64,000 bases of DNA from Octopus bimaculoides (GCF_001194135.2 NC_068990.1:19587820-19651819), one strand, 5' to 3'. Positions 3,404 through 47,802 are shown, numbered from the stretch's first letter. The notes: a model not told the origin generated them from the sequence alone. A program made the numbers and translations.

Positions 3404-3601
3404 GCACTGGAAGGTATTGATATTAAGAAATACTGGAGTCCAAAACTTTACATTGAAAACACACTAGGTGATCCAAAAGAAAATATACGGCACAGAGTGA
3501 ACTTCAATGATAAAGGTGAAGCTTACATCGTTGAGAAACGGGTGATTAAAGGAACTTTCATGGAGAACTTGGAGTTGAATGATTTCCCATTTGATGTCCA
3601 A
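3404..3601 (+). CDS. Internal coding exon of a Cys-less (Pro-loop) pentameric ligand-gated ion channel subunit; extracellular domain from about loop A to the Pro-loop
   Basis: Polypyrimidine tract plus CAG acceptor (AG 3402-3403) and donor CAA|GTAAGC (GT at 3602). 198 nt, phase 0-0, translating to ALEGIDIKKYWSPKLYIENTLGDPKENIRHRVNFNDKGEAYIVEKRVIKGTFMENLELNDFPFDVQ. Contains the pLGIC WxPxxxxxN motif and the FPFDxQ loop, with no Cys. Confidence 0.9.
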
Positions 3602-4011
3602 GTAAGCAACACGAATTTATCTTTTGCCATTTGCTTCTGTCTTGTTTTTCCGCTACGACTTCCTTCCTGCAATTTTCCGATTTATATTTCTCGAAGTTAT
3701 TTATCTTGTTGTTATAAACGTGTACACTATTCAGTTCGTACTGAACTAAAAAGTGAGAAAAATAATATCATTTTAATGCTAGAGATATTTGTTTATCAGA
3801 CATACTTATATATTGCTATGATCATCCTTATTGATCGAAAAGAAAGTTGCGTTGTTACAAACAGAATGAAAGGCGCAACATGTACAGTCTTCTATCGTGA
3901 TTGTCTATAAGTGTCTTGTCGGCGATTTTAGAAGGTGTTCCACTGCTCGCTATGCGCAGATCTAATTTCAGCTCATTGTCTGACTGACGGAAGACTACGT
4001 TTGTCAATGTA

Positions 4012-4064
<53 letters not shown>

Positions 4065-4453
4065 NNNNNNNNNNNNNNNNNNNNNNNNNNNNNNNNNNNN
4101 NNNNNNNNNNNNNNNNNNNNNNNNNNNNNNNNNNNNNNNNNNNNNNNNNNNNNNNNNNNNNNNNNNNNNNNNNNNNNNNNNNNNNNNNNNNNNNNNNNNN
4201 NNNNNNNNNNNNNNNNNNNNNNNNNNNNNNNNNNNNNNNNNNNNNNNNNNNNNNNNNNNNNNNNNNNNNNNNNNNNNNNNNNNNNNNNNNNNNNNNNNNN
4301 NNNNNNNNNNNNNNNNNNNNNNNNNNNNNNNNNNNNNNNNNNNNNNNNNNNNNNNNNNNNNNNNNNNNNNNNNNNNNNNNNNNNNNNNNNNNNNNNNNNN
4401 NNNNNNNNNNNNNNNNNNNNNNNNNNNNNNNNNNNNNNNNNNATATATAGACA

Positions 4454-4498
<45 letters not shown>

Positions 4499-5395
4499 AT
4501 ATATGCATATATACATGCGTATATGTACATACTTACATTTATACGTATATATCTGCATATGTGGGCACAGGACGTCATGAAACGTATACAACAAAAGAAT
4601 TCGAAGCACGGGTACAGGGAACATGGACTATTCTTTCGAATAACGAAAGACACAAATGGAAAACAATACAAACATATAGAACGACCATTCATCAGTTGTT
4701 GGCTGTTTCTCTAGTCTCGTATTTCGAGCATTTAACAACAATATACGCTTTTGTATATTGTTGTTAAGTGCTCGAAATCGTGTTGCAGCCATCAACTTGT
4801 ACGGTCTATATGGATGTATGGAGTCCAGCAAAATTCGCTTCCCTTCACTTCACATTTTTTTATCCTTGAAATCAGGAACTTCCTTAAGCTGGCGTTCATG
4901 TAATTTAATTGTAGATAATTCTCTATATATTCCAGGCTTCAAAAGTATGTAGGAACAAGTCATTAATCGTTAAAAGATTAAGAATCATAAAGGATGATAA
5001 GAATTACACTTATAGAGATAAGATTGAAACAAGCACACGGACCGTATCGCTTGTCTCAAGATCGCTTTCTCCACCTCGTCTCGGAGAGGCTGGAAAGTTG
5101 CTGTGCAATGTACTTCTACATTTAAAGATAATAAACGTCTCGAGAAATTGAGGAAAATAACTCAATTCTGAATTTTAAAAATTTATGTGGATTATTATCT
5201 CTCAGCATTACTCCTCCTCACTCACTGATTAATCATTAGTATGTTTTGATACAATGTATTATTCGACTGATAGCCAAGTGGCCGATACGGAAATGGATGT
5301 TATCGTATCTCATGTAAGGGATAAAAAAATAATTAATTAAAACAGCACATTAAATAAAGAAAAAAAAAATATCATATGCACATATATAGGCCCAA

Positions 5396-5803
5396 GAGTG
5401 GCTGTGTGGTAAGTAGCTTGCTTACAACCCACATGGTTCTGGGTTCAGTCCCACTGCGTGGCACCTTGGGCAGGTGTCTTCTACTATAGCCTCGGGCCGA
5501 CCAATGCCTTGTGAGTGGATTTGGTAGACGGAAACTGAAAGAAGCCCGTCGTATATATGTGTATATGTATATATATGTATATGTGTGTATATGTTTCTAT
5601 GTTTGTGTTTGTCTCCCCAACTTCGCTTGACAACCGATGCTGGTGTGTTTACGTCCTCGTAACTTAGCGGTTCGGTAAAAGAGACCGATAGAATAAGTAC
5701 TAGGCTTACAAAGAATAAGTCCTGGGGTCGATTTGCTCGACTAAAGGCGGTGCTCCAGCATGGCCGCCGTCAAATGGCTGTAACAAGTAAAAGAGTAAAG
5801 AGT
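5396..5803 (+). mobile_element. SINE family A, full length (tRNA-like head, internal (TA)n/(TG)n, (AAGAGT)n tail)
   Basis: Head GAGTGGCTGTGTGGTAAG...GGTTCAGTCCC. The same sequence recurs at about 1400-1680(+), 13178-13713(-), 21731-21902(+), 24910-25150(+), 26270-26700(+), 28135-28550(-), 29210-29543(+), 37370-37530(+), 43000-43280(-), 43980-44250(+), 50888-51039(+), 55436-55794(+) and 62255-62580(-). Confidence 0.85.
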
Positions 5804-7105
5804 ATTCCTTGTCGGAAGAGTCTCGGAATTTAAATTAATTAAAATTAATTATACAAAACTGCATGTTGTGATTCTGATCTCTAACTGTACTTTGTCCACT
5901 CTGGTGATAATTTAGCCTCTTCAACGCAGATAGATTAACCGTTAATACAGCTCTTGAAATGACTAGAGAGGATATGTTCTACGAGACTGAACAGTGCATG
6001 TTTGATATTTTAAACGAATAACTGAACAAATATTTCTAAAGATATCTATTTTATGGACAGTTAATATTAAAAGGCGCCAGCATACTTCGCGAGCCGAAAC
6101 ACTATGATTAATGAATCTATACATACTAAAGAATTAGAGAATAAGAATGAGTCATACTATTAATATTTATTCTGGCTAAAAATGCAAGTGTGTCAGCCTT
6201 AGATTTTAACATGATTAACACTAATTAAAATAGAATGAAACGCCAAGGGAATTTCAATTCCAGCAATATGGTTTCTATACTGGATACTTTTGCCTCTATT
6301 AAACAGCCTTGTCCAGCTACAACTGCGCATATTATTCGCTTTGGCTTAAAATTAATAAGTAATATAATTATGGAATTGATCTGAGTATATCGACTCTCAT
6401 CTGAACCTCGGGTAGTTTTATTTTATGATTGCTCCATTGTGCAATAGCAGTTATTACCCATTGTTCAGTAGCAGTTATTAGCAAATCTGCCGTATTATTT
6501 GGACTTATGGGAGAACGGCTACATATGTTGTTAATCACTGACTTTCAGTTTAATATTTGAGTTTTTGTAAGGAGGCGAGCGGGCAGAATGGTTAGCACGC
6601 CGGGTAGAATGCGTAGTGGTGTTTCTTCCTTCTTGGCGTTCGAAGTGCGACTTTCACGGTCCATAAAATGAGTACTAACTGAACACTGGGGTTGTTCTAA
6701 TCGACTTATCAGCTCATCCTAAATTGCTGACCTTGAGCCAAAATTTGAAATCAATATTTGAGTATTTGTGATATATTCTTCTGTCAATTGTGCACTATAC
6801 TGTCCAATTCTTTTTCTAATTTTTCTAATACTTTTAGGTGTTCGTTTGGTCTGAGTCTTTGCTACGTCATATAATTATATGGTGTAGCCATTTTGAACGT
6901 GAAAATATGTTCTAAAATATCATTTAGCATGTTTGTGAAACAATCGTTTTTGCAGCTGTTTGCCAAGAGTATCGAGGGTCGCCCTTCTTCGATAATTGTA
7001 GTTCTTCTTACAATTACTCGGGAGAAATTTCCATTTGGTAATACTTCAAAACAGGCATTTTCTGAAAAAGAGAATTAAAAAGATGTCCTCACATTACGAG
7101 AGTCT

Positions 7106-7160
<55 letters not shown>

Positions 7161-7161
<1 letters not shown>

Positions 7162-7376
7162 CCTTTCTACTGTAGGCACAAGGTCTGAAGTTTGGAAGAG
7201 GGGGCTCAGTCGATTGCATCGACCCCAGTGTTTAACTGGTACTTATTTAATCGATCCCGAAAGGATGATAGGCAAAGTCGACCTCGGCTGAATGAAAACC
7301 CAGAACGTAAAGGCGAACGAAATGCCGCTAAGCATTTTGTTCAGTGTGCTAACGGTTCTGCCAGCTTGCTACCTTA
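7161..7376 (-). mobile_element. SINE family B copy, tail type 2, next to (AGT)n
   Basis: Reverse complement of the family B consensus. Confidence 0.8.
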
Positions 7377-7734
7377 GTGCTGATGATAATAATGGTGGTC
7401 AGGATGATAATAGTTATGTTTATCGTGATAATGATAGTAGCCAGTAGAGTTTGACAAAGATTTCAAAAAAGCAAATACAACACACAATTAGTGAGGTTTC
7501 TATCAATCACAAGAACATGAGAAATGTCAGACGTCTAACAAAAGATATAACAAGACTTTAAAATAAAATACCAATATAATTTCAATAAGAATGCAATCCC
7601 TAGCAGAACAGAGCATCTAGAATAATCCTGGGAAAACCTTAACCAAAATGTCCGTTTTGCACGGCCACTTCCTAAACATCGAAAGTGCTCTCTCAAAGCT
7701 TCTTTTCTGCTTTTTAGAAGCGCATGCATAGGAC

Positions 7735-8150
7735 AGACTCACCAGTCTTGCTAATCTCACCCATCATTCAATTCATACGCTAGAAATCAGCACCTCCCTA
7801 TCTATTCTTATCTTCCTTTTCAACTCGTATTTGAATACGTTGTCCGGATAGGCATATTCTTCTTCAAATCGTTCAGATTAACCCACTACAGAACCTCTTT
7901 CATTTCACCAAGCACAGGAAGTTTTGCCTCCTTTCCATGTTAAACGAAGGTGGTGCGCGGGAACGTCACTGTGCATTCGATGAATTACATGCGACTGCAG
8001 CTCTTCGACACAAGCTCACAGGTGGTAGCTAATGCACCGATACTGTACCACAGTGACTGTCTAGGCGCCGATAAGATTTCTTTAGACGACTTTCTCTTGG
8101 CGATATCTTTTATGTAAATATCTGTAGCCTTTCTCTTGATAGCGGATAAT
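7735..8150 (-). mobile_element. Highly decayed L1/Tx1-like LINE ORF2 3' end
   Basis: Minus-strand fragments MKEVL*WVNL and FKYELKRKIRIDREVLIS...WVRLARLV resemble, from memory, the C-terminus of mollusc Tx1-like ORF2. Confidence 0.4.
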
Positions 8151-8388
8151 GCTCACATTCCTCTCTCTCAAGAACTCAATGCCATCACGTTGACATTGAT
8201 TTACATATGTTATTTGCCTGCAATGAAAAAAACAGAACGTAAAGTTTACTATCCACGAATAGATTCTCTACCAACATGTGCAAGTAGAACGACGTGCGTC
8301 AAATAATATAAAACTTATATCCACGTTTGTATTACTTTCGATACAAACTTCATATATCATATTCTATATTGAACACATACACACACGC

Positions 8389-8452
<64 letters not shown>

Positions 8453-9777
8453 TTAAATGCATATAACACACATATATTTATATATAAACACATACACACA
8501 TATATAGATGCATATATATATATATATGCATCTATATATATATATATATATATATATATTTGCATACAACATCGTGTCTGTAAATGTGAGTCATGTTATC
8601 TAGTGAAGAAGCAATAGCAACAAAAGAAAGCGAAAGTTGTTATGACGGAATTGTCTAATGAATCACAGAACCATTGACAAGTTCCATAGTCATAACAATC
8701 TATCAACAGTATATGTCATAGCTCTCAACATGACATCCAATAACGCTTTCAGTATCAATCTATTAGTCTCTTTAATACTCACAGCTGGCATTCTATTTAC
8801 GATTACTGCATTTCTCCAGGATGATAGATTGCCGGTTTACCTGCTGAGGAGTCGATAGTTAACATCCTGCCATTGCCAGTGTATTTAACTGTGTAATTAT
8901 GCTGTGTCTTGCCATCATAAATAGATTTTATCTTCTTGGAAAATCTACTTCTAGACGTCTGTGAGCAAGTGTTTGGTTATTGTGCATATATATGAGGTCA
9001 AGTCTTCGTTGTTACAGAAATGAACAACGGCACTGATGACAGCTGAAATATATTACAAGGTGACTCAACATTAGATTAAATAGATCCTTGGTTACTCTGT
9101 TTAGTGTAATTAGTGGAGCATCATCCCCACTTTTACCTCCATGGTTGCACACAATGTTAGCCAGGTATTAAGGTAACACTTAATGCAAAATGGATACGGA
9201 ATTTCTGTAATATTTTCATCCTAATTTCTTCTAAGTATCACTTTATATACGCACTTAAGATGGTTTACAAAACTCCGAGTAAGCCTTTAGGGGTTTTCTG
9301 CTGAGGTAGCATCTGTTATCTTAGAAGCACCTAAATTATCTCAACACCCTGCTCTGTCAAGGTAAAAAGGACACATTGAAAATTATAGTTTCTAATCCAT
9401 TTTTTGTTACTGTCGGCCCCGAGACGTCTTTTAAGTTCTCTATCTCTCCTTCCCTTTACTCTTCCTGTCAAAATGATCTTGGACATGAATTGTGGCGCAT
9501 TGAAATTCCAAAATACGATAGCTTTGTGGATTTGAACTTCTAGCTTTTCTAGAACTACAGAGTTTGTTGACCTGTTTTCCAGCTGATTCTGACTAATTTA
9601 TGAAAGACCCTCTCTTATCATATAGCTCTAAACAGGTTGAAATATTTACTGGCAATATTCCTTTGATTGTATTTTGTCAGATATGTCCGAGCTGATGTTA
9701 ATGAGTATCATGGTTCTTAAAACTACAAGAGACGCTTCTTGCATAAGCAAAACGCCTGAACGAGAAATAAACATAGG

Positions 9778-9830
<53 letters not shown>

Positions 9831-10458
9831 TTAATTTAGAGACAGTGATGTATATGTAATACTCTGTCAAATCTACATTTTATTTTCATCTACATGTATA
9901 TTTGTAAAAAATTTATTTTGGAAACTCTGGTTAACAATTTACTACCAACAAATAACAACGTGATGCAGCTTCTTTCACTTTAATACGCCAACTTGTTTTA
10001 TCTCTTTGTTTTCCTGTAATTGACGAGTGATTATCAAGTTCCGCTTAATGAAGCCTCTTTTGAAATGAATAACATTTACTAAATTTATTTTTTAATGTGT
10101 TGAGTTACCGTATTTTGTTTATCAACTTTAAAATACTCATTCTCGGCTTAATCTAACACGACTGAGTAGATATTTTTTTTTCTCGAATTCAGTAATATTT
10201 TTCATATTATCATGTGTTTTCTAACTTAGATATGTTACTAATAGCGCTAAGCTTATGTTATGTGTACGTGGCGTATGTTTACATGACGGCAACAGTATAA
10301 CTGATGCCATTTGTGATAATCGGATAATATTCTTGAAAGTGTTATAGTTTAAAAACAATAAATACCTTTGAAGACTGCTGCTGTTTGATATTGTTTCAGT
10401 CAATGAATTTTAACTATTAATTTCTCGATGTTTACAACAAATAGAACAACGTCATGTA

Positions 10459-10518
<60 letters not shown>

Positions 10519-10551
10519 GTTGTTGTTGTTGTTGTTGTTGTTATTATTTAA

Positions 10552-10763
10552 GATGGTGAGCTGGCAAAATCGTTAGCACGCCGGACGAAATGATTAGCGG
10601 CATTTCGCCCGTCGCTACGTTCTGAGTTCAAATTCCGCCGAGATCGACTTTACCTCTCATCCTTTTGGGGTCGATAAATTAAGTAGCAGTGCAACACTGG
10701 GGTGGATGTAATCGACTAGTCCCCTTCCCCATAATTTGAGGCCTTGTGCCTTCAGTAGAAGAG

Positions 10764-10822
<59 letters not shown>

Positions 10823-12400
10823 GTTACCTTGCTGAAAAAATACTTAGCGGCGTTTCGTCCGTCTTTACGTTCTGAATTCAAATTCCGTCGAGGCCAACTT
10901 TACCATTATCGGGACCGATAAAATAAGTACCACTCGAACACTGGGGGTCGATGTCATCGACTCACCCGCCCACCTGAGATTGCTGGCTTTGTCTCGAAAT
11001 CTCCAAACATTACTATTAGCGTCATTTCTTGAGATTTGACATCCTGATTTCAAATTCCACTGAGACCGACATTCCATTTCATCATTTCAGCATCAATAAA
11101 ACGAGTACCAGTTGAGTTCTCTGTCAATATAACGGAATAATCCCCTGCCACAAAACTAAATCCCTGAGCCTCTAGCAGAAGGGAACTTAGGAGGCAAGCT
11201 GGCTGAAGCGTTAGCACGCCGGACAAAATGCTTAGTGGTATTTCGTTTGTCTTTATGTTCTGAGTTCAAATTCTGCCGAGGTTGACTTTGTCTTTCTTCC
11301 TTTCGGTGTTGATAAATTAAGTACCAGCTACGTACTGGGATCGACTTAATTGACTGGCTCCTTCGCAAAAATTTCGGGCCTTGTTCTTTCAGTAGAAAAC
11401 AATATTTTTCGTTCTGAGTTCAAATTCCGCCGAGATCGACTTTGCCTTTCATCCTTTCGGAGTCGATAAATTAGGTACCAGCTACGTACTGAGATCAACC
11501 TAATCGACTGCCCCCCCCCTCCACCCAATGTTCAGGTCTTGTACCTAGAGTAGAAAAGAATCGTTAGCACGCACGACGAAATGCTAAACGGAATTTCATC
11601 CGTTTTTACGTTCTGAGTGCAGATTACACCGAGGTCAACTTACTTAGTGTTTCATTCTTTCGCGATTATACTGTCTCCTTAAATTTTCCGGTCTTGTACC
11701 AAATTTTAAAACCATTAAAGACGTCGCGCTGGCAGAATCTATTGCACTTTGCGCAAAATGCTCAGCGGGATTTCTTCGGCATCTTTACAAGGTGAATTCA
11801 GATTCTGCTGAGGTCGAGTTTGACTTTCATCCTTTCAGGTCAATAGGATAAGTGTCCATTCACCACCGGAGTTGATGTTATCGATTTGCATCCTCTCCTC
11901 AAAACTGCTAGCCTTATGCTAAAATTATTACTATTGCTTTTGTTGTTGTTGTTGTTGTTTGTTGCTGTTAAGATGTCAACCTGGATAAATCGTTAGTCGA
12001 AGAAATGTCTTACGGTATATATTTATGTTCTTTAAATCCTGATTTCAAATCTCACTAAAAGTCAATTTTGCATTTCATCTATACGAGATCGATAAAATAA
12101 TATAGAAGTGGCTTCGATAAAATAATGTAGAACTGGCTTCGATAAAATAATGTACAACTGGTTTCCATAAAATATTGTAGATCTGGCTTCGGTGGTATGG
12201 TATCAATTGATGCTCCTGGCATTGTATCTAAATTAGAGATTAGTTAGTGCAGTGACCTGGCAGAATCGTTACAGCATCATAGAAATCGTTTTACGTATTT
12301 TTGTTTCGAGGCTTCACAACTCAATTCTAATCCCATCTATGTCAACTTTGCCTTTCATCATTTTAAGTTGATAAATTGAAATACTATTCAAGTACTTTTT
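10552..12400 (+). mobile_element. Head-to-tail cluster of about 8 full or partial SINE family B copies
   Basis: Repeated gagctggcagaatcgttagc heads and gccgaggtcgactttgcctttcatcc cores, all on +, some separated by (ATT)n. Confidence 0.8.
12095..12190. repeat. 25-bp minisatellite (about 3.5 copies) inside a decayed SINE B
   Basis: actggcttcgataaaataatgtaga-like units. Confidence 0.8.
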
Positions 12401-13177
12401 TTTCAAATTCTGGTTGATTCGTGTAAGATTTTAAAGGTATGTGTTGCCTTTTTTTGTTAAATAGTTACCGATTTTCCATAGAGGGAAAATGGTGTTTATA
12501 TTCCCCATTCAGAAATACTGGTGTTTATATTCCCCATTCAGAAATACTGGTGTTTGCATTCATCGTAAGTCAAGAGTAGAAACAAACAGTTATCTCCCTT
12601 GAAAGCCTTGATTCGAATTACTTGGTTTGTTTTACAATGTCTTTTCTCTTGTGAATACCGCTACTGTTTAGAATCAACTCATAAACATAATCATACTGCA
12701 GTTTCCCACTTTGTTATTGCATGATTGCTAGATTGCTTTAATTTCAGGTTGAACTACTTTTATATAAATAATTTCAAAAATGCATCGGTGTGATATGCTA
12801 TCAACTGCATTCACTAAACAATCCATGCTATATTTAATGCCTGTTATCTTCATGCAGTTTTCCGTAACGTTTCGCTTCAGCAATAACCGTTCATTACAAT
12901 CATGCACCTGTTTCCGGGCAACTTCAGCAATTACGCTTAGAATACATCTTCTACTAAAGGAGCAGCCAGGCTGGTTTCGAGACCAGCAGTTATAGTATTA
13001 TATATTTTTCGTAAATAGATTCTGGTATCTAATTTTACTTTTATGCATATTGCGTTGTTTCAAGCAATGAACAAAGATTTCCTTTCGAGTAACCTGTGGG
13101 GGACTTAATCGTAGACAGGTTAGTGATATATTGATGGTTGATGTCACAAATTCATAAACATTATTTAAAGCTATTTT

Positions 13178-13713
13178 ATTACTCTTTACTTGTTTCAGTC
13201 ATTTGACTGCTGCCATGCTGGAGCACCGCCTTTTTAGTCGAGCTAATCGACCCCAGGACTTATTCTTTGTAAGCCCAGTACTTACTCTATCGGTATCTTT
13301 TGCCGAACCGCTAAGTTACGGGGACGTAAACACACCAGCATTGGTTGTCAAGCGATGGTGGGGGGACAAGCCCAAATATATACACACATACATACATACN
13401 NNNNNNNNNNNNNNNNNNNNNNNNNNNNNNNNNNNNNNNNNNNNNNNNNNNNNNNNNNNNNNNNNNNNNNNNNNNNNNNNNNNNNNNNNNNNNNNNNNNN
13501 NNNNNNNNNNNNNNNNNNNNNNNNNNNNNNNNNNNNNNNNNNNNNNNNNNNNNNNNNNNNNNNNNNNNNNNNNNNNNNNNNNNNNNNNNNNNNNNNNNNN
13601 NNNNNNATATATACAAGGCTATAGTAGAAGACACTTGCCCAAGGTGTCACGCAGTGGGACTGAACCCAGAACCATGTGGTTCGTAAGCAAGCTACTTACC
13701 ACACAGCCACTCC
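13178..13713 (-). mobile_element. SINE family A copy, with its internal microsatellite collapsed into an N-gap
   Basis: Reverse complement of the 5396-5803 element on both sides of the gap. Confidence 0.85.
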
Positions 13714-15053
13714 TACGCCTGAAAAAAAGACACCATTACTGTTAATTTGCAGTCTTTAATGTGAATTTCCTTTAGTTACGCTTAGTCCATGCTATTATTG
13801 ATTTCCTGGTATTATATATTAATGCCTGTCATCGTATTCCACGAGAAAAAAGTTTTAAATATTATCCAATACAGTACGTGTAAAGCTGTGCCATTTTCTA
13901 TCACTGTATAACTTGTATTTGTATTTTATGTTTTTCCTATGAAATTTGTAAATACTTCAGATGCACGTCAGGAAAAATGGTTAGAGACAATTCGTCCGTC
14001 TTTATGTTCTGAGTTCAAATTTCGCCGAGGACGATTTTGTCTTTCATCCTTTCGGTGTCGATGAAATAAGAATCCAGTGGTGCACTGGGATTGATGTAAT
14101 TTCAGGCCTTGTGCTTATCGTAGAAAGCATTATTATTATTATTATTGAGACTGCGCCTAGATTCAATCCCGGCATTCTGCTTATCTCAATTTCCAGATCT
14201 TTAATTGTGGTTATTGTCTCCGTTTATATAAACGTCTGTTTAATCCAATTGCCCATCCACACAATTTATATAGCAATAGCCTAAATGCTTTTATATGATT
14301 ACACCAGATTGCCGAGCGTGGATCTCGTACGACTTGTTTTTGTGCAACGATTATTTTTCTTCGTTTTCAATTATTTTCAATTTTATTTTTTCATTTATTT
14401 TTTGCCTAATATACATGAAGTGGAAAATGCTGCTATATAGTCTGCAGGCTGTAAAAAAAAAATGAATTGCAAGGGGTTTAGATTTCGTGATTAAATGCAT
14501 ATTCCTTTTATAATTCAATAATATCGAAATTGTACCTGCACCTTATTTCGTTCATTTTTTTAATAGACTTTTCTAATCGTTTTTTGCGTTGGATAGTCTA
14601 CATATTTTCTGTTGGATATCTTTTCTAACATAATCGTGTTTAGCAATAAAATTAGAAACGAAAAAGACTAAGAAGCCAGCGAAAATATTGTGATCCTTCG
14701 TATACTACTGTTTGTATGTGTTGTACTTACCTCTAGCCATTAAAACCAAACCTATTTCTGAGACATTTTTGGCTTTCTCACTTCGAAAATACGAACAACA
14801 TGAGTCATCTGGGAAGATGTATCTTCTTATAAAAGTACAAGCTGGGAGTAGATTATCTGCTCTTTCTTTTGGAATGATTTCTTTTTCCATTTTTATGTGG
14901 CATAGTTACAGTATATTATTAGTCTTCTTTTCTCTTGATTTCCGCTCTAAACTCTCCCTTCCAACACATCCGACAAACCCCGACACTCCAGTTCAATATA
15001 GTTTTCTTTCTGTGAAGCGATTTGGTAGCTCGTCTTTCACCACTCATCTAGTT

Positions 15054-16204: not shown

Positions 16205-16298
<94 letters not shown>

Positions 16299-32010: not shown

Positions 32011-32794
32011 NNNNNNNNNNNNNNNNNNNNNNNNNNNNNNNNNNNNNNNNNNNNNNNNNNNNNNNNNNNNNNNNNNNNNNNNNNNNNNNNNNNNNNNNNN
32101 NNNNNNNNNNNNNNNNNNNNNNNNNNNNNNNNNNNNNNNNNNNNNNNNNNNNNNNNNNNNNNNNNNNNNNNNNNNNNNNNNNNNNNNNNNNNNNNNNNNN
32201 NNNNNNNNNNNNNNNNNNNNNNNNNNNNNNNNNNNNNNNNNNNNNNNNNNNNNNNNNNNNNNNNNNNNNNNNNNNNNNNNNNNNNNNNNNNNNNNNNNNN
32301 NNNNNNNNNNNNNNNNNNNNNNNNNNNNNNNNNNNNNNNNNNNNNNNNNNNNNNNNNNNNNNNNNNNNNNNNNNNNNNNNNNNNNNNNNNNNNNNNNNNN
32401 NNNNNNNNNNNNNNNNNNNNNNNNNNNNNNNNNNNNNNNNNNNNNNNNNNNNNNNNNNNNNNNNNNNNNNNNNNNNNNNNNNNNNNNNNNNNNNNNNNNN
32501 NNNNNNNNNNNNNNNNNNNNNNNNNNNNNNNNNNNNNNNNNNNNNNNNNNNNNNNNNNNNNNNNNNNNNNNNNNNNNNNNNNNNNNNNNNNNNNNNNNNN
32601 NNNNNNNNNNNNNNNNNNNNNNNNNNNNNNNNNNNNNNNNNNNNNNNNNNNNNNNNNNNNNNNNNNNNNNNNNNNACTACGCAGTTAATGCCCTTTATAT
32701 ATAAGTAATTTTATATATATATATATATATATGCTTCCAGTGCGAATGTTTTTTTTATACGTGACTTGTTTTACAATTCTGTAAATACTAATAA

Positions 32795-35632: not shown

Positions 35633-35671
<39 letters not shown>

Positions 35672-35950: not shown

Positions 35951-36016
<66 letters not shown>

Positions 36017-37131: not shown

Positions 37132-37346
37132 GGTGGCGAGCTGGCCGAACCGTTAGCACGCCGGGCGAAATGCTTAGCAGTATTTCATCTGCCGTCAAAT
37201 TTTGATTTCGAATTCCGCCGAGGTCGACTTTGCTTTTCATCTTTTCGGGGTCGATAAAATTAGTACCAAATACGTACTGAGGTTGATGTAATCGACTTAA
37301 ACCCTTCCCCCAAAATGTAAGACCTTGTGCTTCCATTAGAAAGGAT
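37132..37346 (+). mobile_element. SINE family B copy, tail type 2
   Basis: Matches the family B consensus. Confidence 0.85.
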
Positions 37347-37639
37347 TTCTGATTGAATATACGTTTTGTGGAAGACCTTGTTGTGGGGTTAAAAAGCTCG
37401 CTCTGCTATCTCGTTGTCTGGGGTCCAGTCGTACTGTGCAGTAGGCACCTTGGGAGCGGGTCTTTTGCTATAGCCCTGAGCCGACCGATATCTTTAGTGT
37501 GGATTTGGTACACAAAAACTGTGTGGAACCTTGCCTAATTACATGACCTTTACAACTCCAAAACTGCGTGGAAGCTTAAGTACATGCCCTTCGCCACTTC
37601 GTGTTATTTCTCTTGGCTCATTTTTGCTTCAATCATATA

Positions 37640-38860
37640 TACACAGACATGAAAGAAGTAAATAGACACCCTTGTAATCATTAAAATTTATCTAAATCTG
37701 AAATTATACATTCAAATTATTTGTTAGTTGTTAAAATGTGAGCATTTAATATTTAGTAGACATGCTATTTGCATTTTTCAATACAAGGGCCCTATTAGGC
37801 ATGTTACTGATCAGATGGTGAATATTCTCTTGCGGAATTCCTTGCTAAGTTTCATGCAATAATCTCAAAATATCTCGCTTTGAAGATGCTTTCTAGTTCT
37901 TTTTATGAAGTGTCCTGTCCATTATGTCCCAGAAGTGTTCAAGTGGTTTCATATCTGGTGACTGGCTTGGCTATGGAAGCTTTCTAATGCCATTCTTTTC
38001 CAACAAATCTTGGGTCATTTTAACTGTGTGACAAGAAATCCCATCTTCCATAAATAGTCTTCTTAAATCATTTCACCACCGGAAAAATTTGACAGGAGTC
38101 CTTTCTGCAATGCGGGCACATATTTATTTGAGTTTATCTTTCTCTCACACTCCACCAGCTCTGATCAACCATTGCTTCAAATTGTTCCCCAGACCATCAC
38201 AGAATAGCTGCTGTGTTTCATTGTTAGCTGCAATCTTTTCACATCAAATTCTTGATCAGAGAGTCTCTAGACCTACACTGGGCCACTGTTAGGAAATACA
38301 GCAAATCTGGACCCATCAGAGAATATGACAGTGTCCCAAAATGCTAATGGCCTCTCCACCATCTCGCTGGCCCAATCTTTTCTCCGCTTCATATTCCTTC
38401 TTCCTGCTCTGCCATAGTAACCAAGTTTGTGGAGATACCTGACAGCTGTTCTGTGACTGACATCAACTTGTTCTGCTATGTCAGAGGTCTTGCAACGAAG
38501 ATTGTCCTCCACACTTCTCTTAGCAAATAGAAGGGTCCTGTCAGAGGGCCCTGGTTGATTTGCACAAGGTGATGTGAACTCCTTCCCCTCTCTGGTGAAT
38601 TGCACAATCACTCTATGAACTGTAGAAAGAGAGATCCCAAGGTTTTCTGCGCGTTTACGCTGACTATGCCCACCTTCAGAATGACCCACAATACGGCCTC
38701 TTTGAAATTCAGACAGTTCCAAGGCTTCTTTTGTACATGGCATAATTAAACAGTCACATATAGAACCTGAAATATAAAAAAAATATCAATTAATAAGAAA
38801 TAGGAACCATTACAAGTTAGAATAAACATAAAACAATGTTTTATGTGGTGTCTATTATGT
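37640..38860 (-). mobile_element. Decayed Tc1-like DNA transposon (DD34E-type transposase pseudogene)
   Basis: ORF 38743-38273 has an N-terminal HTH ([11 protein letters not shown]), GYYGR and VIFSDGSRF. Broken frames downstream give MVWG, SQSPDMKPLEHFW and a terminal STKY* ending at 37746. Left end is TA|CACAGACATG...; aatagacacc (37661-37670) has its exact inverse at 38847-38856. Confidence 0.85.
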
Positions 38861-40322
38861 GGTGTTATTTCTTGTAAATTGCCATAAAGGCATTACACAG
38901 AGGGGGACGCTACAACACATGTGGGATCATATAACAATTAAAAATATAAAAATCATCTCCGCGACCTCAGGAAAACTCCTTGTATTCTCCAAAGCTCCGT
39001 CCATCTTTATGACCCCCCTTACATGCTCCTCCTCTGCTGAAGACAACTCAGACCCGCTAAAGTCTGAGTATATTGTCTCTACCCTCAAAGGAGCAAAAAA
39101 AAAAAAAAAAAAAACGTCTGACACAAACGACAAACCAAATGCACTCTGATTGACGCATGCGCGGAAGCAAGCTTTTTGCCACACAGCCACGCCTGCATAT
39201 ATTAACTATTTAATAGCTTGGTTAATTATAGAGGTGCCCTACTTGGCTTGCAATTTGTCCTGAGAATGTGTGTTGAAGGTAAAGCGATTGCAGTGTAGAA
39301 GACATATTAGCCAGTCAAAAACACACTAAAACAGCAAACTTCAGTATAATAAACAATAAATGTTTAAGATCGGTTAATCTTAAAGCAATTGAAGGCGTTT
39401 CACTGCTATTTATAGCGAGTCGGTCGACCGCTTGGATTTAATTTATAGCTAGAAGAGGACAGAACGGTAGAGTATCAGTTAATTACGCTGTATTGCTTAC
39501 TACACTAAATATTACAAGCATTTATAGCATAAGATTTATACGTTAAAATCATCGTTGGTTTGAGAGACCACAGCAGTTAGCAAGAGAGGTAAATAATGAC
39601 TGGTGATATCTGAGACGACACAAATTACCGTTAAAACCATTAAAAAACAAATCCACTTCTTCATGTTCTTTCTTACATTCATTCAACATCGTTTAACCTT
39701 ATTTCATGAAATTCTTATTCTCCTTTCCCCAATTATTATAGTTCCTTTCCAACATACTCTTGTCTTCTCAAATTACATTGCTTCATATTGGGGTCGTCCT
39801 ACGTTCATTTATTTAACGGGTACAATTTAGTCGTTGCATCATTCATTCAGCGTGAATGATTGTCCATAGTATCAAAATTTACCTCATGGCTGGATGCCAA
39901 GATTCTATAATGCAAACGTGCGTGTCATACCTTCTGAGTGTGTGCGTAATTGTCTTAGAGATATTGTTTTATATACATACATANNNNNNNNNNNNNNNNN
40001 NNNNNNNNNNNNNNNNNNNNNNNNNNNNNNNNNNNNNNNNNNNNNNNNNNNNNNNNNNNNNNNNNNNNNNNNNNNNNNNNNNNNNNNNNNNNNNNNNNNN
40101 NNNNNNNNNNNNNNNNNNNNNNNNNNNNNNNNNNNNNNNNNNNNNNNNNNNNNNNNNNNNNNNNNNNNNNNNNNNNNNNNNNNNNNNNNNNNNNNNNNNN
40201 NNNNNNNNNNNNNNNNNNNNNNNNNNNNNNNNNNNNNNNNNNNNNNNNNNNNNNNNNNNNNNNNNNNNNNNNNNNNNNNNNNNNNNNNNNNNNNNNNNNN
40301 NNNNNNNNNNNNNNNNNNNNNN

Positions 40323-40363
<41 letters not shown>

Positions 40364-41806
40364 ACATGTGTGATTATCTATGTGTCTCTTTGTGTCTTCA
40401 TCACCCCTTTGAGATCGGTGTTGGTGTGCTTACGTCACCATAACATATTTTCTCTTATATATATATATTCTCTTACACATACAAACACACACGTATATAT
40501 AAGCCCTAGAATTCGCAAGGCCGGCAATTCAGTTTCTATGACGCATAAGTGACCACAACGTTCCCCATGAACGGGATAATGATTCGTTGTAGAGTGCAAA
40601 ATTAGCGATCTTGTTGAGAGGGGCGGGGCAGGGACAGACAGGTCGATTACTTCGACTCCAGTGCTTGTCTTGTACTTTAATCTATTGACACTAGAGGGAT
40701 AGAAGTTGACCTTTGCGGGGCTTGAACATCAGAACCTAAATAGCTGCAAGAAATGTCGTTAGACATATTGCTCGACGTACAAACGATATTACTAGCTCAC
40801 CTTATATATGTGTGTGTGTGTGTGTGCATTGATAGATAGGCATGTGTGTGTATATATGTATATGTATGTATGTTTGTATAAAGAAATCATTTCTATTATT
40901 CATCTACTTAACCTCTCTTAGAGAAACGAATTTTCTTTACAATTTCTCTACTTCATACTGTCTTGTATTTCTATATTTTTGATTTTAAAAGGTAGACTGA
41001 AGAGAACAAATTCAAAATTAATATATTATTATTATTATTATTATTATTATTTATTATTATTATCAGGAAATATATCAATGCAATTAATTAGTAAACACAT
41101 GTATCTTAGGTATCTAATAGCATCAGTACATTTATCATACAGAATTTTTTAAAGAAAATCATATTAGTCTTAAAGAATGCTATATTCTTCACAAATTAAA
41201 AATATTGTATCTAATTTGTTGAAACTAAAATAGTTTCTTTTTCTCTGAGGATTTACTGACATTTTTCTATCTTTTTCAATTGCCGCATTTTCATTCTATA
41301 TATAACTACTTCCACCCTCTTTCTTTTTCTACTTACATTTCTTCTCCTTTTCCTTTCTATATAACTCCTGATCGTAACCATGTTACTGTCTATACTGTCT
41401 CGTATTCGCTTTCTACCTGATACCTTCTCTCACTCTGCTACTCATCCCCTCTCCTACCCCACTTCTCTCATTTATCCTGTATCATATTCCGTTTTTTTTT
41501 GTTTTTGTCTTTCAATATAACTACTTTCAATATTCAGAATATCTACTTCAAATTTTATCTTAAAAGCAGTAACACAGTTTAATGTAGTGAAAAAGATTTA
41601 CATTAGCAATACATGTTTATTTGCTATGAAGAGAAAAGAACATTGGAGTCTGTTGAGATTTTGATAAACAACAATTTATTCTTTTCGTACACAAGAAATG
41701 ACAGTTGTTGTTACAACGAACGACAAAACATCGAGAGTTTTTGTTCTTGGTGTAGTGGCTGCAGCAGTTAAAGTGTCGTTAGTTGCTTGCCGGCTACTGA
41801 CTTCTA

Positions 41807-41962
41807 ATGTCGTTCGTCCTCCGACTGTTCATTGCCTTTCTGTTGTTAGCTGCTGTCAGCCGACTTTGTTTGTCAACTCCGACGTTGTCTGTCACTGCTC
41901 TCTCAGCTGCATCCCAAAGCTCTGTGTCTAGTAGTCACGATGTACTGCATTTATGCCGGACG
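41807..41962 (+). CDS. Candidate first coding exon with a signal-peptide-like N-terminus (nested gene or alternative start)
   Basis: ATG at 41807 gives MSFVLRLFIAFLLLAAVSRLCLS-TPTLSVTALSAASQSSVSSSHDVLHLCRT, followed by the donor-like ACG|GTAGGT. Lies in a non-repetitive, locally GC/CpG-richer stretch. No homology recognised. Confidence 0.25.
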
Positions 41963-43742
41963 GTAGGTTCAAATGGAAGCGCGCCAAAAGAAAGCGATCC
42001 TATTTGACACGATGCCGTGTTTGGTCAGAGTTTGTTGATCATGTCGGCAATATCTTAGTGAATTGTGATATCGAGCAATGGCTGAATATTCCGGCTACAA
42101 CTATAATAAATTTATTTTACCTTGCGAAAAAATTGATAGTTATAATAAAGTATAACCATCAAGTTAACTAGAGAAAAAGCCGACATGTCATTCACCAATT
42201 TTAAAGATTTACTTTTAAATGTGGTTGGTAAATATTTGGGCTGTTATACCCTTTCCCCCGCCCTCGATGTATTTTAAACGTCTTTCGTTGCCTTCGTTGC
42301 ATGTTAAGCAGCAGTAGCTCGAAACTTATAAGTGCTAATCTGTTCACTCAAGATCATGGCATATTTCTTCTTGGTAAACACGTACTCTGTCAGAATTCCA
42401 ACTAGGTTTAATTATTTGAAGCATTGATCTACTATCGAGATCTGTACTCGTGTTCCACTACACTCAGGTCCGCGACCGAGGCTTACGCTTTTGACACTTA
42501 ATGATGTGATACCCATGCACCTAGTAGTGTACACAGACGATAATAATATCAGTATAGTTTAGTATAATAATGAGAGCAATTTGCATCTGACGAATGCTTT
42601 CTTATTGAATAATCTTACGATAGTTACTGCTATGTGATTACATAATGATAGATGGTCATAGGGTTGCATGATGAAGCTGGTCTTAGATCAATGAATAACA
42701 TCAGCAGTAAGAGAGCAGGTAAGTTAACGTAGGCTAAACTACGGCTCAGAAATTTATGTGTGGTTCCTAAGATTATATTGGATTCCATAGCCATTGTTCT
42801 TAATCTTACCAACCAGATTTCAACATTTTACTTGCCAAAATGAAGACTCTTTAAAAGCATTCAACAAGCAGGGATTAAACAATCTTTCTTAGCGAGTGAA
42901 AAGTAGGAACTGTATATTTAACTTTTATCGTACGCCTTGAATAATTTTCAGTCGACTAAATCGACGCTAACACTTTTTCATGCCTACTACTTACTCTATT
43001 AGTTCCTTTTGCCGAACCGCTCGTTTGCAGCGTCTGATACCCACCATCACCTGTTGTAAAGCGGTGTAGTGGAGGAGAAATACTGACACAAAGAAACACA
43101 AACACAAAATAACACAAACACGACGGGCTCCTTTCAGTTTCCGTCAATCAAGTTCACTCACAAGACTTTGGCTAGCCCTAGGCTATCGTAGAAGATACTT
43201 GCCCAAAGTACAACGCAGTGGGACTGAACCGGGAAGTATGTGGCTGGGAAGCAAACTTCTTACCTCACAGCTATGCTTAAAGATATTTTTGTGGCTGAAC
43301 TTATGAAACACCTTGGCCACTCCTAGTCTATAATCGTTAGGCCTTCAAGAAATAGCTGCCAAATCTCCATCAAAGTGTACCCGATCATCACAGAAAGCAA
43401 AACACACAAAATAATCTATCCCTGTGTATTTTATGACTGCAAATCGAAAAGTAGGATGGCTATTGTGGCATTCATTATCATTCTCTATTGTCGGTGCCGC
43501 CTGGTATTAAACAACAAAACAATAACATAATACCGAACAGCCACTAACGCGACCGGTAACCACAACAAAGACGAAAATCATCTGCCGCATTCTATGTTAA
43601 CCGCAAATTCCTGATTTCAGGGTTCAGTAAGTGAGTGGCAGGCAAGGTATGGCTGTTGCTCACTCAACGTCTACAATGTATCACAATTGTTGGGAAAGGT
43701 ATGCTTGCAATGGGCGAGCCATCCTACATCGGTAAATGATAA

Positions 43743-43821
<79 letters not shown>

Positions 43822-45039
43822 ATAGATAGATAGATATACATGCACACATACACACATATATATAAGTCTTTGAGAGGAAGAAGTGTTTATTATATAACAA
43901 AGCGTAGGAGAAAAGTAAAATAAATATATAAGATGTTAGCAGAAAAAAGGTGTATGTGTGTGAAGGTGTGTTTGTATGCTTAAGAAGCACGCGTTGAAGT
44001 CATGTACTTTCAGATTTCCATATTCTGTCCCACTATGTGGCACCTTAGGCAAGTGTTTTCTCCCATAGCCTCGGACCTTGTTAGTGAATTTGTTAAGCGG
44101 AGACTGCGTTAAAGCTTATATGTAGGTCAAAATGTGTGTGTATGTTTCTTTATACTTGTCATTCTCCCATCGGTTTGTTGGTTTGTTTACGTGCCAATGA
44201 CATAGCGCTTCGCTAAAAGTGACCGACAAATCAAGTACTAGATTTTAAAAGAGATATTTTGTTATATGAAATACACTAACGGCTTATTAACTGTTGAATA
44301 AACTGAATTTCAAACATAGTATTCGTTTGTGAGCGAAATTGATGAAAACTGACGGAAGAAGGTGTATTGGAAAGTTTATTTTGATTTATTTTAAAATAAG
44401 ATCAATAAAGAATGATTCTTTAAGAATGTTACATTTTACAAATAGACATGTAAACAATTTAGATTATTTTAAGAAGGAAAAATCTCTTAAAATATCTGTA
44501 TTATAATATGTATTAAATTTAAATAGAATTTACTACATATTTGTTTCCACTATTCAAAGCACAGAATATTTATAAATCAGATTGATACTCACGTGTAATT
44601 TCTTTAATAAGAATTACACAAGGCGCTGTCTCTCCAAATGTTACTAACGTGAACGAAATTTTTGCATTGATTGAGTAGTACTGTGTAGCATATCAGCATT
44701 ATTTTATTAATTTAATCCAATTGTTCTGTAATTCTGACTGAATTTTACCTTTGTTACAATCGCGTACATAGGAGAATTTATTTATTTATTTGAGAAATAA
44801 ATGCAAAAGCAAAGAACAAGAAAAGGGCTGCCTTTTGTTAATTTATTAATTTTTAACATACGACTTACGTTTTTAAATAATTTGAAATAGACGGAAATAT
44901 ATTTATTTTTACATGTATTTTATGAACTGTTTTTATAAGGATTTAGCTTATAAAGGTTAATTAAGGAATATGATATTCGATAAAAAATTCTTCTTTAAAC
45001 TTTGTTTTCTTTAAAGAAGCATATTTTCTATTATAATAA

Positions 45040-45663
45040 TGATTTCAAATTTTAGGCACCAAGTAAGTAATTTGTGGAGAGGTAGTAAGCCAATTACACC
45101 CCGCCCCATCCCAGTACTCAACTGATACATATTTTATCAACCCCGCCAAAAGATAAAGTCAACGTCGGAAGAATTTGAACTCAGAAGGTACAGAGGGATA
45201 AAAAACGTTAAACAGTTCGCCAGGTGTCCTAACGATTCTGCCAGCTCACCGATTCCGTTCCCTAGACTAAAAATGGTTTCAAATTTCGGAAGTTATTGAG
45301 GGGAAGAGGAAGTCGATGATATTGCTTCTATAATATTTTTAATCTTTTAAGGCGGCGAGCTGGCAGAAACATTAGCACACCGGGCGAAATGCTTAGCGGT
45401 ATTTTGTTTGTCTTTACGTTCTGAGTTCAAATTCCGCCGAGGTCGACTTTGCCTTTCATCCTTTCGGGGTCGATAAATTAAGTACCAGTTAAGCACTGGG
45501 GTCGATGTAATCGACTTAATCCGTTCGTCTGTTCTTGTTTGTCCGTTACGTTCTGAGTTTAAATTCCGCCGAGGTCGATTTTGCCTTTTATCCTTTCGGA
45601 GTCGATTAAATAAGTACCAGTTACGCACTGGGGTCAAGATAATCGACTTAATCCATTGTCTGT
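45040..45663. mobile_element. Divergent SINE family B pair: a decayed - copy at about 45040-45250 and a + copy at about 45350-45663 with an internal 132-bp duplication
   Basis: ttacgttctgag occurs at 45414 and again at 45546; the sequence runs into an N-gap. Confidence 0.85.
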
Positions 45664-46525
45664 NNNNNNNNNNNNNNNNNNNNNNNNNNNNNNNNNNNNN
45701 NNNNNNNNNNNNNNNNNNNNNNNNNNNNNNNNNNNNNNNNNNNNNNNNNNNNNNNNNNNNNNNNNNNNNNNNNNNNNNNNNNNNNNNNNNNNNNNNNNNN
45801 NNNNNNNNNNNNNNNNNNNNNNNNNNNNNNNNNNNNNNNNNNNNNNNNNNNNNNNNNNNNNNNNNNNNNNNNNNNNNNNNNNNNNNNNNNNNNNNNNNNN
45901 NNNNNNNNNNNNNNNNNNNNNNNNNNNNNNNNNNNNNNNNNNNNNNNNNNNNNNNNNNNNNNNNNNNNNNNNNNNNNNNNNNNNNNNNNNNNNNNNNNNN
46001 NNNNNNNNNNNNNNNNNNNNNNNNNNNNNNNNNNNNNNNNNNNNNNNNNNNNNNNNNNNNNNNNNNNNNNNNNNNNNNNNNNNNNNNNNNNNNNNNNNNN
46101 NNNNNNNNNNNNNNNNNNNNNNNNNNNNNNNNNNNNNNNNNNNNNNNNNNNNNNNNNNNNNNNNNNNNNNNNNNNNNNNNNNNNNNNNNNNNNNNNNNNN
46201 NNNNNNNNNNNNNNNNNNNNNNNNNNNNNNNNNNNNNNNNNNNNNNNNNNNNNNNNNNNNNNNNNNNNNNNNNNNNNNNNNNNNNNNNNNNNNNNNNNNN
46301 NNNNNNNNNNNNNNNNNNNNNNNNNNNNNNNNNNNNNNNNNNNNNNNNNNNNNNNNNNNNNNNNNNNNNNNNNNNNNNNNNNNNNNNNNNNNNNNNNNNN
46401 NNNNNNNNNNNNNNNNNNNNNNNNNNNNNNNNNNNNNNNNNNNNNNNNNNNNNNNNNNNNNNNNNNNNNNNNNNNNNNNNNNNNNNNNNNNNNNNNNNNN
46501 NNNNNNNNNNNNNNNNNNNNNNNNN

Positions 46526-46589
<64 letters not shown>

Positions 46590-46971
46590 CACACTTAAAT
46601 GTGTGTGTGTAATATATATGTTCAATCTCATATTATGAACCTGGTTATCCGTTTGCTGCAACTATTTTCCTTCCACTTCCTTCTGTTAACTTCATCACAT
46701 GTATAAGTCAATGTTGTTTTACAATAGAATTTGGAGTTTATTTTTCAGCTGCTCAAATATATAACATATCTTTCTTGTTCTTGTTGTTCGTTGTGTTGTA
46801 TATTTATAATAACTGTTCTTCCATGCCTCAGAGATTGATAAAATATTTCAGTTATGAAATATGACGTTGCAACTTGACTAAATACAATCTGAATTATACA
46901 ATATATTATGTTGTAATGTAATATAATATAATATAATATATTATATAATATGATATAAATATTAATGTGCT

Positions 46972-47009
<38 letters not shown>

Positions 47010-47544
47010 GACGCTGACAACTGTACGTTTTGCCACCAGAGGTAAACACGCATACAATATACACGGCTACACACGTATGTGAGCACTGAAATATACTCAT
47101 ATAGAAAGAGTTGGAGGGAGAGAGAGAGAGGAGTGGAGAGAGACAGATATAGACAGATAGACAGAGTGTCAGTGAGAGATGTAGGCTCAGGAACAGAGGA
47201 GTGCAGCAGGTGCAAGCACACTCCCGAAAATTGTTTTGTGAATGTAGACAATGAAAATTCTTTGAACATCTTTAATTGGACGTGGGTTCACATCCCGCTA
47301 AGCAAATTTCATTCCTGCACTTCTGGAGACAGAGACAGAAAGAGACACAAACACACACACACACAGACCAAAAGGGAAAATCATTAAAACGGCTGATGTG
47401 AAACAAGTCAGCGTTTCGACGCAGCAATGCCATACATAATCGCCGAAACGTCTCTTACTCTAGCTATATATATTTCTGGTTTTGTCTCCTTTCCTTTTAG
47501 ATATTGCCTTATACAATAAACATTATCACGCTTTATTCTTTCAG

Positions 47545-47802
47545 GATCTCACTGTGACTGTGGCCTCCGAGCTTCCCTCATATGAAGTTGAATTGATTGA
47601 AGACATAGATGAACATCATGTAGTCAATCGACAGTCTTTTGTGGATGAACAAGAATGGCATCTCTACATGCATACGGAAACTGAGAAGAAAGAACTGGCC
47701 ATAGACCAAGCAGATGCTACTGTTCGGAGGTCAGCACTCTCTGTGAAATGTCGAGCAGCGCGGCGACCCGGTTATTTTGTTTGGAATATATTTATGGTAA
47801 CG
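47545..47802 (+). CDS. Next coding exon of the same pLGIC subunit (beta7 to beta10, pre-M1 and start of M1)
   Basis: Acceptor ctttattctttCAG (AG 47543-47544) and donor ACG|GTGAGT (GT at 47803). 258 nt, phase 0-0, translating to DLTVTVASELPSYEVELIEDIDEHHVVNRQSFVDEQEWHLYMHTETEKKELAIDQADATVRRSALSVKCRAARRPGYFVWNIFMVT. The join PFDVQ|DLTV matches the pLGIC PFDxQxL pattern; also has the EW motif and pre-M1 RRPGYF. Confidence 0.9.

Follow-up and report, generated by a model that had tools for sequence, protein, structure and literature searches.

Two exons of an octopus gene for a Cys-less, ELIC-like ion channel subunit whose sensor domain may face the cytosol

[quoted passage not shown] An earlier note, made from the sequence alone, had picked them out as parts of a ligand-binding domain (LBD) without the two cysteines of the Cys-loop. 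They are very probably two LBD exons of an annotated octopus subunit gene that belongs to a primary Cys-less, ELIC-like clade of Spiralia, a reading that leaves the orientation of the protein in the membrane open; its identity part is close to certain. The exons and the intron between them are as follows.

3404-3601, + strand: exon A, 66 codons, with acceptor ...tttacag/G (AG at 3402-3403) and donor CAA/gtaagc (GTAAGC at 3602-3607); its product, ALEGIDIKKYWSPKLYIEN...MENLELNDFPFDVQ, runs from the middle of the LBD to the centre of the Pro-loop, matches RefSeq P0001 at 100% and was aligned to a cephalopod mRNA
3602-47544, + strand: intron, nominally 43,943 nt, with 9 assembly gaps, mostly microsatellite-flanked, and transposon remnants
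47545-47802, + strand: exon B, 86 codons, with acceptor ...ttcag/G and donor ACG/gtgagt (GTGAGT at 47803); its product, DLTVTV...QSFVDEQEWHLY...SVKCRAARRPGYFVWNIFMVT, comprises the LBD's second half together with the pre-M1 arginines and the 10 residues that open helix M1

Exons A and B join in phase 0 without a stop codon and encode 152 amino acids (aa), ALEGIDIKKYWSPKLYIEN...FPFDVQ followed across the junction by DLTVTV...EQEWHLY...CRAARRPGYFVWNIFMVT. This is the peptide that had been proposed, and both the splice and the octopus origin of the gene were confirmed by a 100% match, across the junction and well outside what chance would give, to a RefSeq protein of Octopus vulgaris (P0001, isoform X3). 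The identity to the O. bimaculoides orthologue (P0215, 418 aa) is 152 of 152 residues. The same junction is found in the RefSeq models of O. vulgaris, O. bimaculoides, O. sinensis and Argonauta hians as well as in flatworm proteins, which are 61-62% identical and pass it without extra residues. At the level of mRNA, L001 and L002, which are Logan transcript contigs of a further cephalopod (runs SRR3011300 and SRR21372860), were aligned without gaps to the joined exons over 452 nt, and the junction that they contain reads TTTGACGTTCAG joined directly to GATCTCACTGTG. A lookup of contigs encoding P0001 returned no record. Of 13 runs of N in the window, 9 lie within the intron; since all nine are intronic, the reading frame is unaffected and the uncertainty is limited to the length of the intron. 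As the orthologues pass the junction without extra residues and the mRNA contigs are ungapped there, no exon is hidden in these gaps.

Comparison with the transcript of the other cephalopod revealed differences at 90 of 456 nt, distributed over the first, second and third codon positions as 4, 1 and 85. Apart from one Tyr-to-Phe change, the differing codons are synonymous (87 of 88). Across cephalopods the protein is 99% identical and the DNA differs at 20% of positions, and the octopus and flatworm proteins are about 60% identical. Purifying selection on the octopus gene is very strong, which excludes a pseudogene; the gene is intact and is transcribed. More generally, one could suppose a decaying exon pair, or an artefact produced by two unrelated exons brought together across gaps or by bacterial contamination, as nine gaps separate exons A and B, no further exon of the gene is present in the window, the sole O. 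vulgaris protein retrieved is a truncated isoform and the closest solved relative is bacterial. The canonical phase 0 splice sites on both exons, the joined sequence found as mRNA with almost exclusively synonymous differences, and the junction common to four cephalopods and to flatworm proteins leave hardly any room for such an explanation; a 44-kb spliceosomal intron in an AT-rich, microsatellite-rich octopus context excludes bacterial DNA.

Membership in the superfamily is supported by the full-length orthologue. P0215 scored 30.1 bits against the Pfam model Neur_chan_LBD (PF02931, gathering score 26). Its AlphaFold2 model, built on an 82-sequence alignment (A4), consists of 10 strands followed by 4 long helices (mean pLDDT 83.7, pTM 0.76), and in Foldseek searches it superposed on complete GlyR, GABA-A, RDL and sTeLIC subunits with E-values of about 1e-19 to 1e-20 and a target-normalised TM-score of about 0.7. 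The pLGIC fold put forward in the earlier note is therefore upheld. The best solved relative is the bacterial channel ELIC, both for the 152-aa fragment (E about 8e-4) and for P0215, which hits ELIC at 1.3e-18 (70 bits) compared to 2e-11 (46 bits) for GABA-A gamma2, the best animal Cys-loop receptor. No nicotinic acetylcholine receptor (nAChR) was present among the best 60 solved relatives of P0215.

The positions that the two cysteines of the Cys-loop would occupy were located by counting from the FPFD motif (3584-3595). These positions and the main conserved blocks of the two exons are listed here, with the conservation seen in the family.

3563-3565, + strand: first Cys-loop Cys position, GAG (Glu); E124 is invariant in 82 members
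3584-3595, + strand: FPFD Pro-loop motif, with the superfamily-defining proline at 3587-3589; F131, P132 and D134 are invariant (82 members)
47548-47550, + strand: second Cys-loop Cys position, CTC (Leu); L138 is conserved in at least 90% of 82 members
47635-47658, + strand: SFVDEQEW motif, the LBD block with the highest conservation in the family; invariant E173, near-invariant F168, D170, Q172 and W174
47749-47766, + strand: pre-M1 block C-R-A-A-R-R; the Cys is present in 103 of 113 sequences, R209 and R210 in 113 of 113
47773-47802, + strand: start of M1, YFVWNIFMVT, continued in the orthologue by FLICSLAF...

The C-x13-C disulfide pair is absent, its two positions being occupied by Glu and Leu; the earlier reading of both as non-Cys was correct, and the two residues are invariant or nearly so in the family. 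The SFVDEQEW block aligns with residues 153-160 of ELIC (D-N-E-E-I-D-E-W) and ends on a common E-W at 159-160. The invariant residues of the family include positions at the domain interface, in the Pro-loop (E124, E127, L128, F131, P132, D134, Q136 and D137), in the beta1-beta2 loop (K38, T44, K46 and E47, with G40, E41, I42 and D43 nearly invariant) and in the M2-M3 loop (P266, Y270, L271, T272, D275 and Y277). By contrast, in the stretch from SFVDEQEW to pre-M1, aligned with ELIC around Y175-F188, most consensus positions have no majority residue.

Absence of the cysteines could in principle reflect a recent loss in a derivative of an animal Cys-loop receptor, of the nAChR, chemotactile-receptor or GABA-A/GlyR lineage. 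Secondary Cys-less subunits of this kind are known from nematodes and from a small number of further animals (Jaiteh, Taly and Henin 2016, PMC4795631), and members of the present family carry database names such as GABAA receptor rho, glycine receptor alpha-3 and nAChR alpha 9b. These names are automatic transfers and are misleading. The similarity ranking, with ELIC at 70 bits ahead of any animal Cys-loop receptor, and the retention of Glu and Leu across six spiralian phyla disfavour a recent loss, as do the lack of a second Cys-loop and of a long M3-M4 loop. At the two Cys positions of prokaryotic channels a polar residue comes first and a hydrophobic one second (Jaiteh 2016), and the Glu and Leu of the family follow this pattern. 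A secondary origin is thus very unlikely, in agreement with the position taken in the earlier note, and the lack of the cysteines probably goes back to an early stage of the family.

Among 1.84 billion representatives, a profile search recovered 2343 sequences at E<=1e-3 and 150 at E<=1e-30. The relatives that carry a species name come from bivalves, gastropods, a chiton, cephalopods, Lingula, nemerteans, annelids, flatworms and rotifers; no non-spiralian relative was found among the best 120 or in ten further clusters, and the family is absent from vertebrates, insects and nematodes. Some members show unusual architectures. Two are fused to long unrelated N-terminal stretches (P0052 and P0028), one to a DDE-1 transposase domain (P0241), and tandem duplicated channel units occur in P0052 and P0054; these fusions and duplications are most likely gene-model artefacts.

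The family is not new, since orthologues are already present in the inventories of 2016 and 2023, as the earlier note had recognised. Jaiteh 2016 described primary Cys-less 'Pro-loop receptors' of protists and invertebrates, mostly Lophotrochozoa, with unknown biology, and the oyster orthologue K1QX27 (P0219) is present in the S1 alignment of that study. Johnson et al. 2023 (PMC9874803) defined a 'Cys-less' clade in schistosomes and named A0A5K4EMP5 as an example, which is P0068 of our set. According to the account of Ross 2018 given by Johnson 2023, planarian homologues are expressed in mechanosensory neurons and their inactivation by RNA interference (RNAi) leads to seizure-like movement. 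A preprint on the ligand-gated ion channels of Octopus vulgaris (10.1101/2025.04.02.646353) used a cys-less group only as the root of its tree. The 'Cys-less' clade of the MolluscaGenes preprint was not equated with the family: it is defined inside the nAChR superfamily by the lack of YXCC and has PAR-type pores, and is probably a different group. The octopus gene is therefore an annotated, uncharacterised gene of a published family, and the designation as an orphan channel of a Cys-less clade stands, with orthologues in the published inventories and no ligand in the literature.

Of the protein, exons A and B supply the greater part of the beta-sandwich sensor, along with the Pro-loop, the pre-M1 arginines and the turns with which M1 starts. 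We infer from homology that five subunits assemble around a conducting pore lined by M2. The M2 of the orthologue, PQNR-LQLSFTLVLTAVAF, is close to that of ELIC, and the M1-M2/M2 stretches of the two proteins (PQNR-LQLSFTLVLTAVAFK compared to SER-LQTSFTLMLTVVAY) are very close. Family-wide, 87 sequences carry Gln and 21 carry Glu at position -2', while Asn occupies -1' in 104 of 113 and Arg occupies 0' in 112 of 113. The octopus orthologue, with Gln at -2' and Asn at -1', does not have the acidic -1'/-2' residue of the schistosome type; Glu at -2' was reported for all schistosome members (Johnson 2023). An acidic residue at -1'/-2' is thus a trait of a subgroup and does not define the family. 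Because M2 matches neither GEK, the cation-channel signature, nor PAR, its anion-channel counterpart, and the net charge of the LBD is about -11 per subunit, the sequence leans weakly towards permeation of cations.

A signal sensed in the beta-sandwich would be transmitted through the beta1-beta2 loop, the Pro-loop, the pre-M1 segment and the M2-M3 loop to the pore, and many of the invariant residues of the family sit in these four elements. The residues aligned with ELIC E131/F133 and Y175/F188, which we take to be in loops B and C of the agonist site, are not aromatic. With invariant residues at the interface on the one hand and a variable, non-aromatic stretch at the position of loop C on the other, the gating machinery is conserved and a classical aromatic-box agonist site is not evident.

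The side of the membrane on which the sensor lies was predicted from 113 full-length-like models starting with Met, by our own hydropathy and charge scripts rather than a dedicated predictor. As a control we used alpha7-type subunits from the same database; many of these are truncated, 25 were usable for charge and 13 for N-termini, and all are from vertebrates or arthropods, so they control the metric and not the quality of spiralian gene models. Some of the family models derive from transcript assemblies and not from gene prediction (P0053, a 2.6-kb Logan contig, and L001/L002).

Firstly, a signal peptide is missing. No hydrophobic stretch precedes beta1 in 109 of the 113 models; one is present in the remaining 4, and in 2 of these it reaches within a residue or two of beta1. 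The N-terminal extensions are hydrophilic and rich in Lys and Arg, with a median length of 82-90 aa (range 9-646). Within the first 45 aa, the highest 10-aa Kyte-Doolittle mean lies at 0.9 (median) and 1.61 (90th percentile) in the family, compared to values of at least 2.19 reached by 9 of the 13 control N-termini with a complete extracellular domain. The first hydrophobic segment is M1 itself, 200-870 residues from the N-terminus and preceded by Arg-Arg.

Secondly, the distribution of charges is reversed. Counted over pre-M1, the M2-M3 loop and the 20 aa that follow M4, which make up the LBD side, Lys and Arg average 14.4, against 3.8 on the opposite side, and the LBD side is the higher one in 103 of 113 models; in the alpha7-type control the values are 4.0 and 18.7, with the opposite side higher in 25 of 25. 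When the pre-M1 arginines are left out, the values are 9.8 and 3.8 for the family and 1.0 and 18.7 for the control. The M3-M4 loop of the family is net acidic and has a median length of 11 aa, compared to 151 aa in the control. M4 is followed by a tail (median 48 aa, net charge +7.6) that opens with a conserved K(K)RRxMxxKDREY. In P0215 the basic tail HKRRTMQQKDKEY (residues 334-364) is modelled by AlphaFold as an extension of the M4 helix to about residue 364, with a pLDDT of about 90; we know of no such family-specific element after M4 in other pLGICs. A near-invariant Cys stands directly before M1 (103 of 113). The LBD contains no N-glycosylation sequon in 84 of 113 models, a count that says little about the side on which it lies.

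The positive-inside rule and the rules for the orientation of signal anchors relate these features to topology. Because there is no signal peptide and M1 begins at least 200 residues into the protein with Arg-Arg before it, the N-terminal domain is expected in the cytosol; with four helices and a cytosolic N-terminus the C-terminal tail would be cytosolic too, which fits its basic composition. Neither the missing disulfide nor the lack of sequons in most LBDs speaks against a place in the cytosol. From these sequence features we lean, by a little, towards an LBD that faces the cytosol. There is about an even chance that the family is the first pLGIC lineage of inverted orientation, with the LBD and both long termini in the cytosol; the channel, in the plasma membrane or in an organelle, would then be gated by an intracellular ligand or ion and not by a transmitter. 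An inverted orientation would also explain why the disulfide is absent throughout the family. No mention of a signal peptide or of the orientation of the family was found in Jaiteh 2016, Johnson 2023, a diatom channel survey or the further literature searched.

The same protein could also be arranged in the classical way, the beta-sandwich being extracellular or luminal and the channel serving as a conventional surface receptor for a transmitter or an environmental chemical. In all pLGICs characterised to date the sensor lies outside the cell or in the periplasm, and ELIC, the closest solved relative, is gated by external amines. The mechanosensory expression of the planarian homologues and their seizure-like RNAi phenotype, in the form in which Johnson 2023 relates them, fit a surface receptor and do not require one, and 4 of the 113 models do carry a hydrophobic N-terminal stretch. 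This placement is harder to reconcile with the other 109, given that alpha7-type models from the same database mostly have a signal peptide, with an Arg-Arg-preceded M1 far from the N-terminus, which favours a cytosolic N-terminus, with a Lys and Arg bias opposite to that of the control, and with a long basic tail after M4 next to an M3-M4 loop of only 11 aa. We regard it as a serious possibility that falls short of an even chance, the cytosol-facing LBD being predicted as the likelier of the two. The conventional, outward-facing receptor that was implicit in the earlier note is consequently not supported by the features of the orthologues.

Several points have to be set against the reading developed here, a Cys-less channel subunit with a sensor predicted in the cytosol. 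On the side of identity, the 152-aa fragment scores 16.5 bits with Neur_chan_LBD, below the gathering score of 26, so that the HMMER check suggested in the earlier note failed for the peptide alone and succeeded only through the identical full-length orthologue. The score of P0215 with Neur_chan_memb (PF02932) is 27.2 bits, marginally under the gathering score of 28.1. The window contains no pore exon, and M2-M4, the termini and the topology were read from orthologues that are identical over the 152 aa. The mRNA support comes from another cephalopod, and isoform X3, the O. vulgaris RefSeq protein retrieved, is truncated and without transmembrane helices. Functional characterisation of any member was not found in the literature searched, in which neither channel activity nor a ligand is reported. 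On the side of orientation, the prediction rests on hydropathy and the positive-inside rule as applied by our own scripts, and residues 20-40 of the long N-terminal isoform of cephalopods form a poly-Ala stretch (Kyte-Doolittle 1.6) that may be a weak signal. The pre-M1 arginines are conserved in all pLGICs whatever their topology. Finally, Johnson 2023 ran DeepTMHMM on the schistosome members and reported nothing unusual.

As found, the octopus protein is an ordinary member of a published and functionally blank branch of the pLGICs, on which the constraint is extreme, and its value is that of a lead. The family occurs in schistosomes and tapeworms and has been proposed there as a drug target. 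The only surprising result is the predicted cytosol-facing sensor. Were it true, the signal that gates the channel would be intracellular, the assumption that all pLGICs sense the outside would be overturned, and both the ligands to be screened and the side of the membrane to which they are applied would change. It might also explain failures of screens of such orphans with extracellular ligands, should Cys-less members have been among those screened.

The remainder of the gene lies elsewhere. Residues 1-73 of P0001, encoded by one or more upstream exons, and everything past WNIFMVT are missing from the readable window, and no other exon was detected there by tblastn with about 190 relatives or with a profile hidden Markov model (HMM) of the transmembrane domain of the family run against all six-frame open reading frame (ORF) fragments. 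The N-terminal exon or exons and those for the rest of M1 to M4 are beyond the window or in gaps. Within the intron (3602-47544), tblastn with relatives and the transmembrane domain HMM likewise found no family-related coding sequence.

Alternative forms of the transcript were also noted. Exon B contains an internal 5' splice site, G/gtcagc, at 47729-47735 on the + strand (last exon base 47729). Isoform X3 is a 238-aa, LBD-only protein without the beta10 strand and without transmembrane helices; by inference it uses the donor at 47729, and the readable window yielded no exon for its last 34 aa. Isoform X2 of O. sinensis (P0224) has a 14-aa insert, LGGKTGEEHLCTRE, directly ahead of the exon A residues. 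This points to an alternative cassette or acceptor upstream of 3404; the readable window does not encode this cassette. Cephalopod transcripts further differ in their N-terminal extensions, which are either long (about 124 aa) or short (about 28 aa).

The following assembly gaps are among those of the window.

32011-32675, 39984-40322 and 45664-46525: N-gaps within the intron
2713-2753, 49088-49940, 51260-51479 and 59384-59538: N-gaps outside the intron

Microsatellites of the (TA)n or (GT)n type flank 10 of the 13 gaps on at least one side, a pattern consistent with simple repeats left unresolved in a genome that is AT-rich (about 33% GC) and rich in microsatellites. The intron also holds, at 38273-38743 on the - strand, a 156-aa ORF with a helix-turn-helix region (Pfam HTH_23, 36.7 bits; HTH_29, 29.9 bits), which resembles the N-terminal portion of a transposase of the Tc1/mariner type and probably represents the remnant of a transposon. 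Adjoining it, 38954-39073 (- strand) matches the unrelated N-terminal part of the chimeric database protein P0028.

Compared with known systems, the octopus gene has in common with the cephalopod chemotactile receptors the pLGIC superfamily and its occurrence in octopus. The chemotactile receptors are nAChR-derived, intronless retrogenes (van Giesen 2020, as cited in the MolluscaGenes preprint). In contrast, the Cys-less gene has a 44-kb intron inside its LBD and is closest to ELIC, with no nAChR in the best 60 solved relatives; the intron and the ELIC-first ranking rule out a chemotactile receptor, and the separation from that group claimed in the earlier note is justified.

The animal Cys-loop receptors (nAChR, 5-HT3, GABA-A, GlyR and GluCl) have the same overall fold, with a TM-score of about 0.7, and share with the family the Pro-loop proline, the pre-M1 Arg and the Arg at M2 0'. 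Unlike them, the family lacks C-x13-C, a signal peptide and a long cytoplasmic M3-M4 domain, and its Lys and Arg distribution is reversed relative to alpha7-type subunits.

The Cys-less receptors of Jaiteh 2016 and Johnson 2023 belong to the same family, Lophotrochozoa-dominated and with no ligand in the literature; cephalopods, signal peptides, orientation and the basic C-terminal tail are not covered in these two studies. The schistosome members of Johnson 2023 have Glu at -2', whereas Gln at -2' and Asn at -1' are found in the octopus protein and in the majority of the family.

ELIC, from Erwinia/Dickeya chrysanthemi, is the best solved relative, at 1.3e-18 over the LBD and M1-M3. Unlike ELIC, the octopus family is eukaryotic, its genes have introns, its models lack a signal peptide, and long hydrophilic N-terminal extensions and a long basic helical tail after M4 are present. 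The residues corresponding to ELIC E131, F133, Y175 and F188 are non-aromatic in the family, and position -1' is Asn instead of the Glu of ELIC. The two nevertheless have in common the absence of the Cys-loop cysteines, the FPFD Pro-loop, the block that ends in E-W (SFVDEQEW in the family), a very short M3-M4 loop, the LPR..Y of the M2-M3 loop and a near-identical M2 core, RLQ.SFTL.LT.VA.

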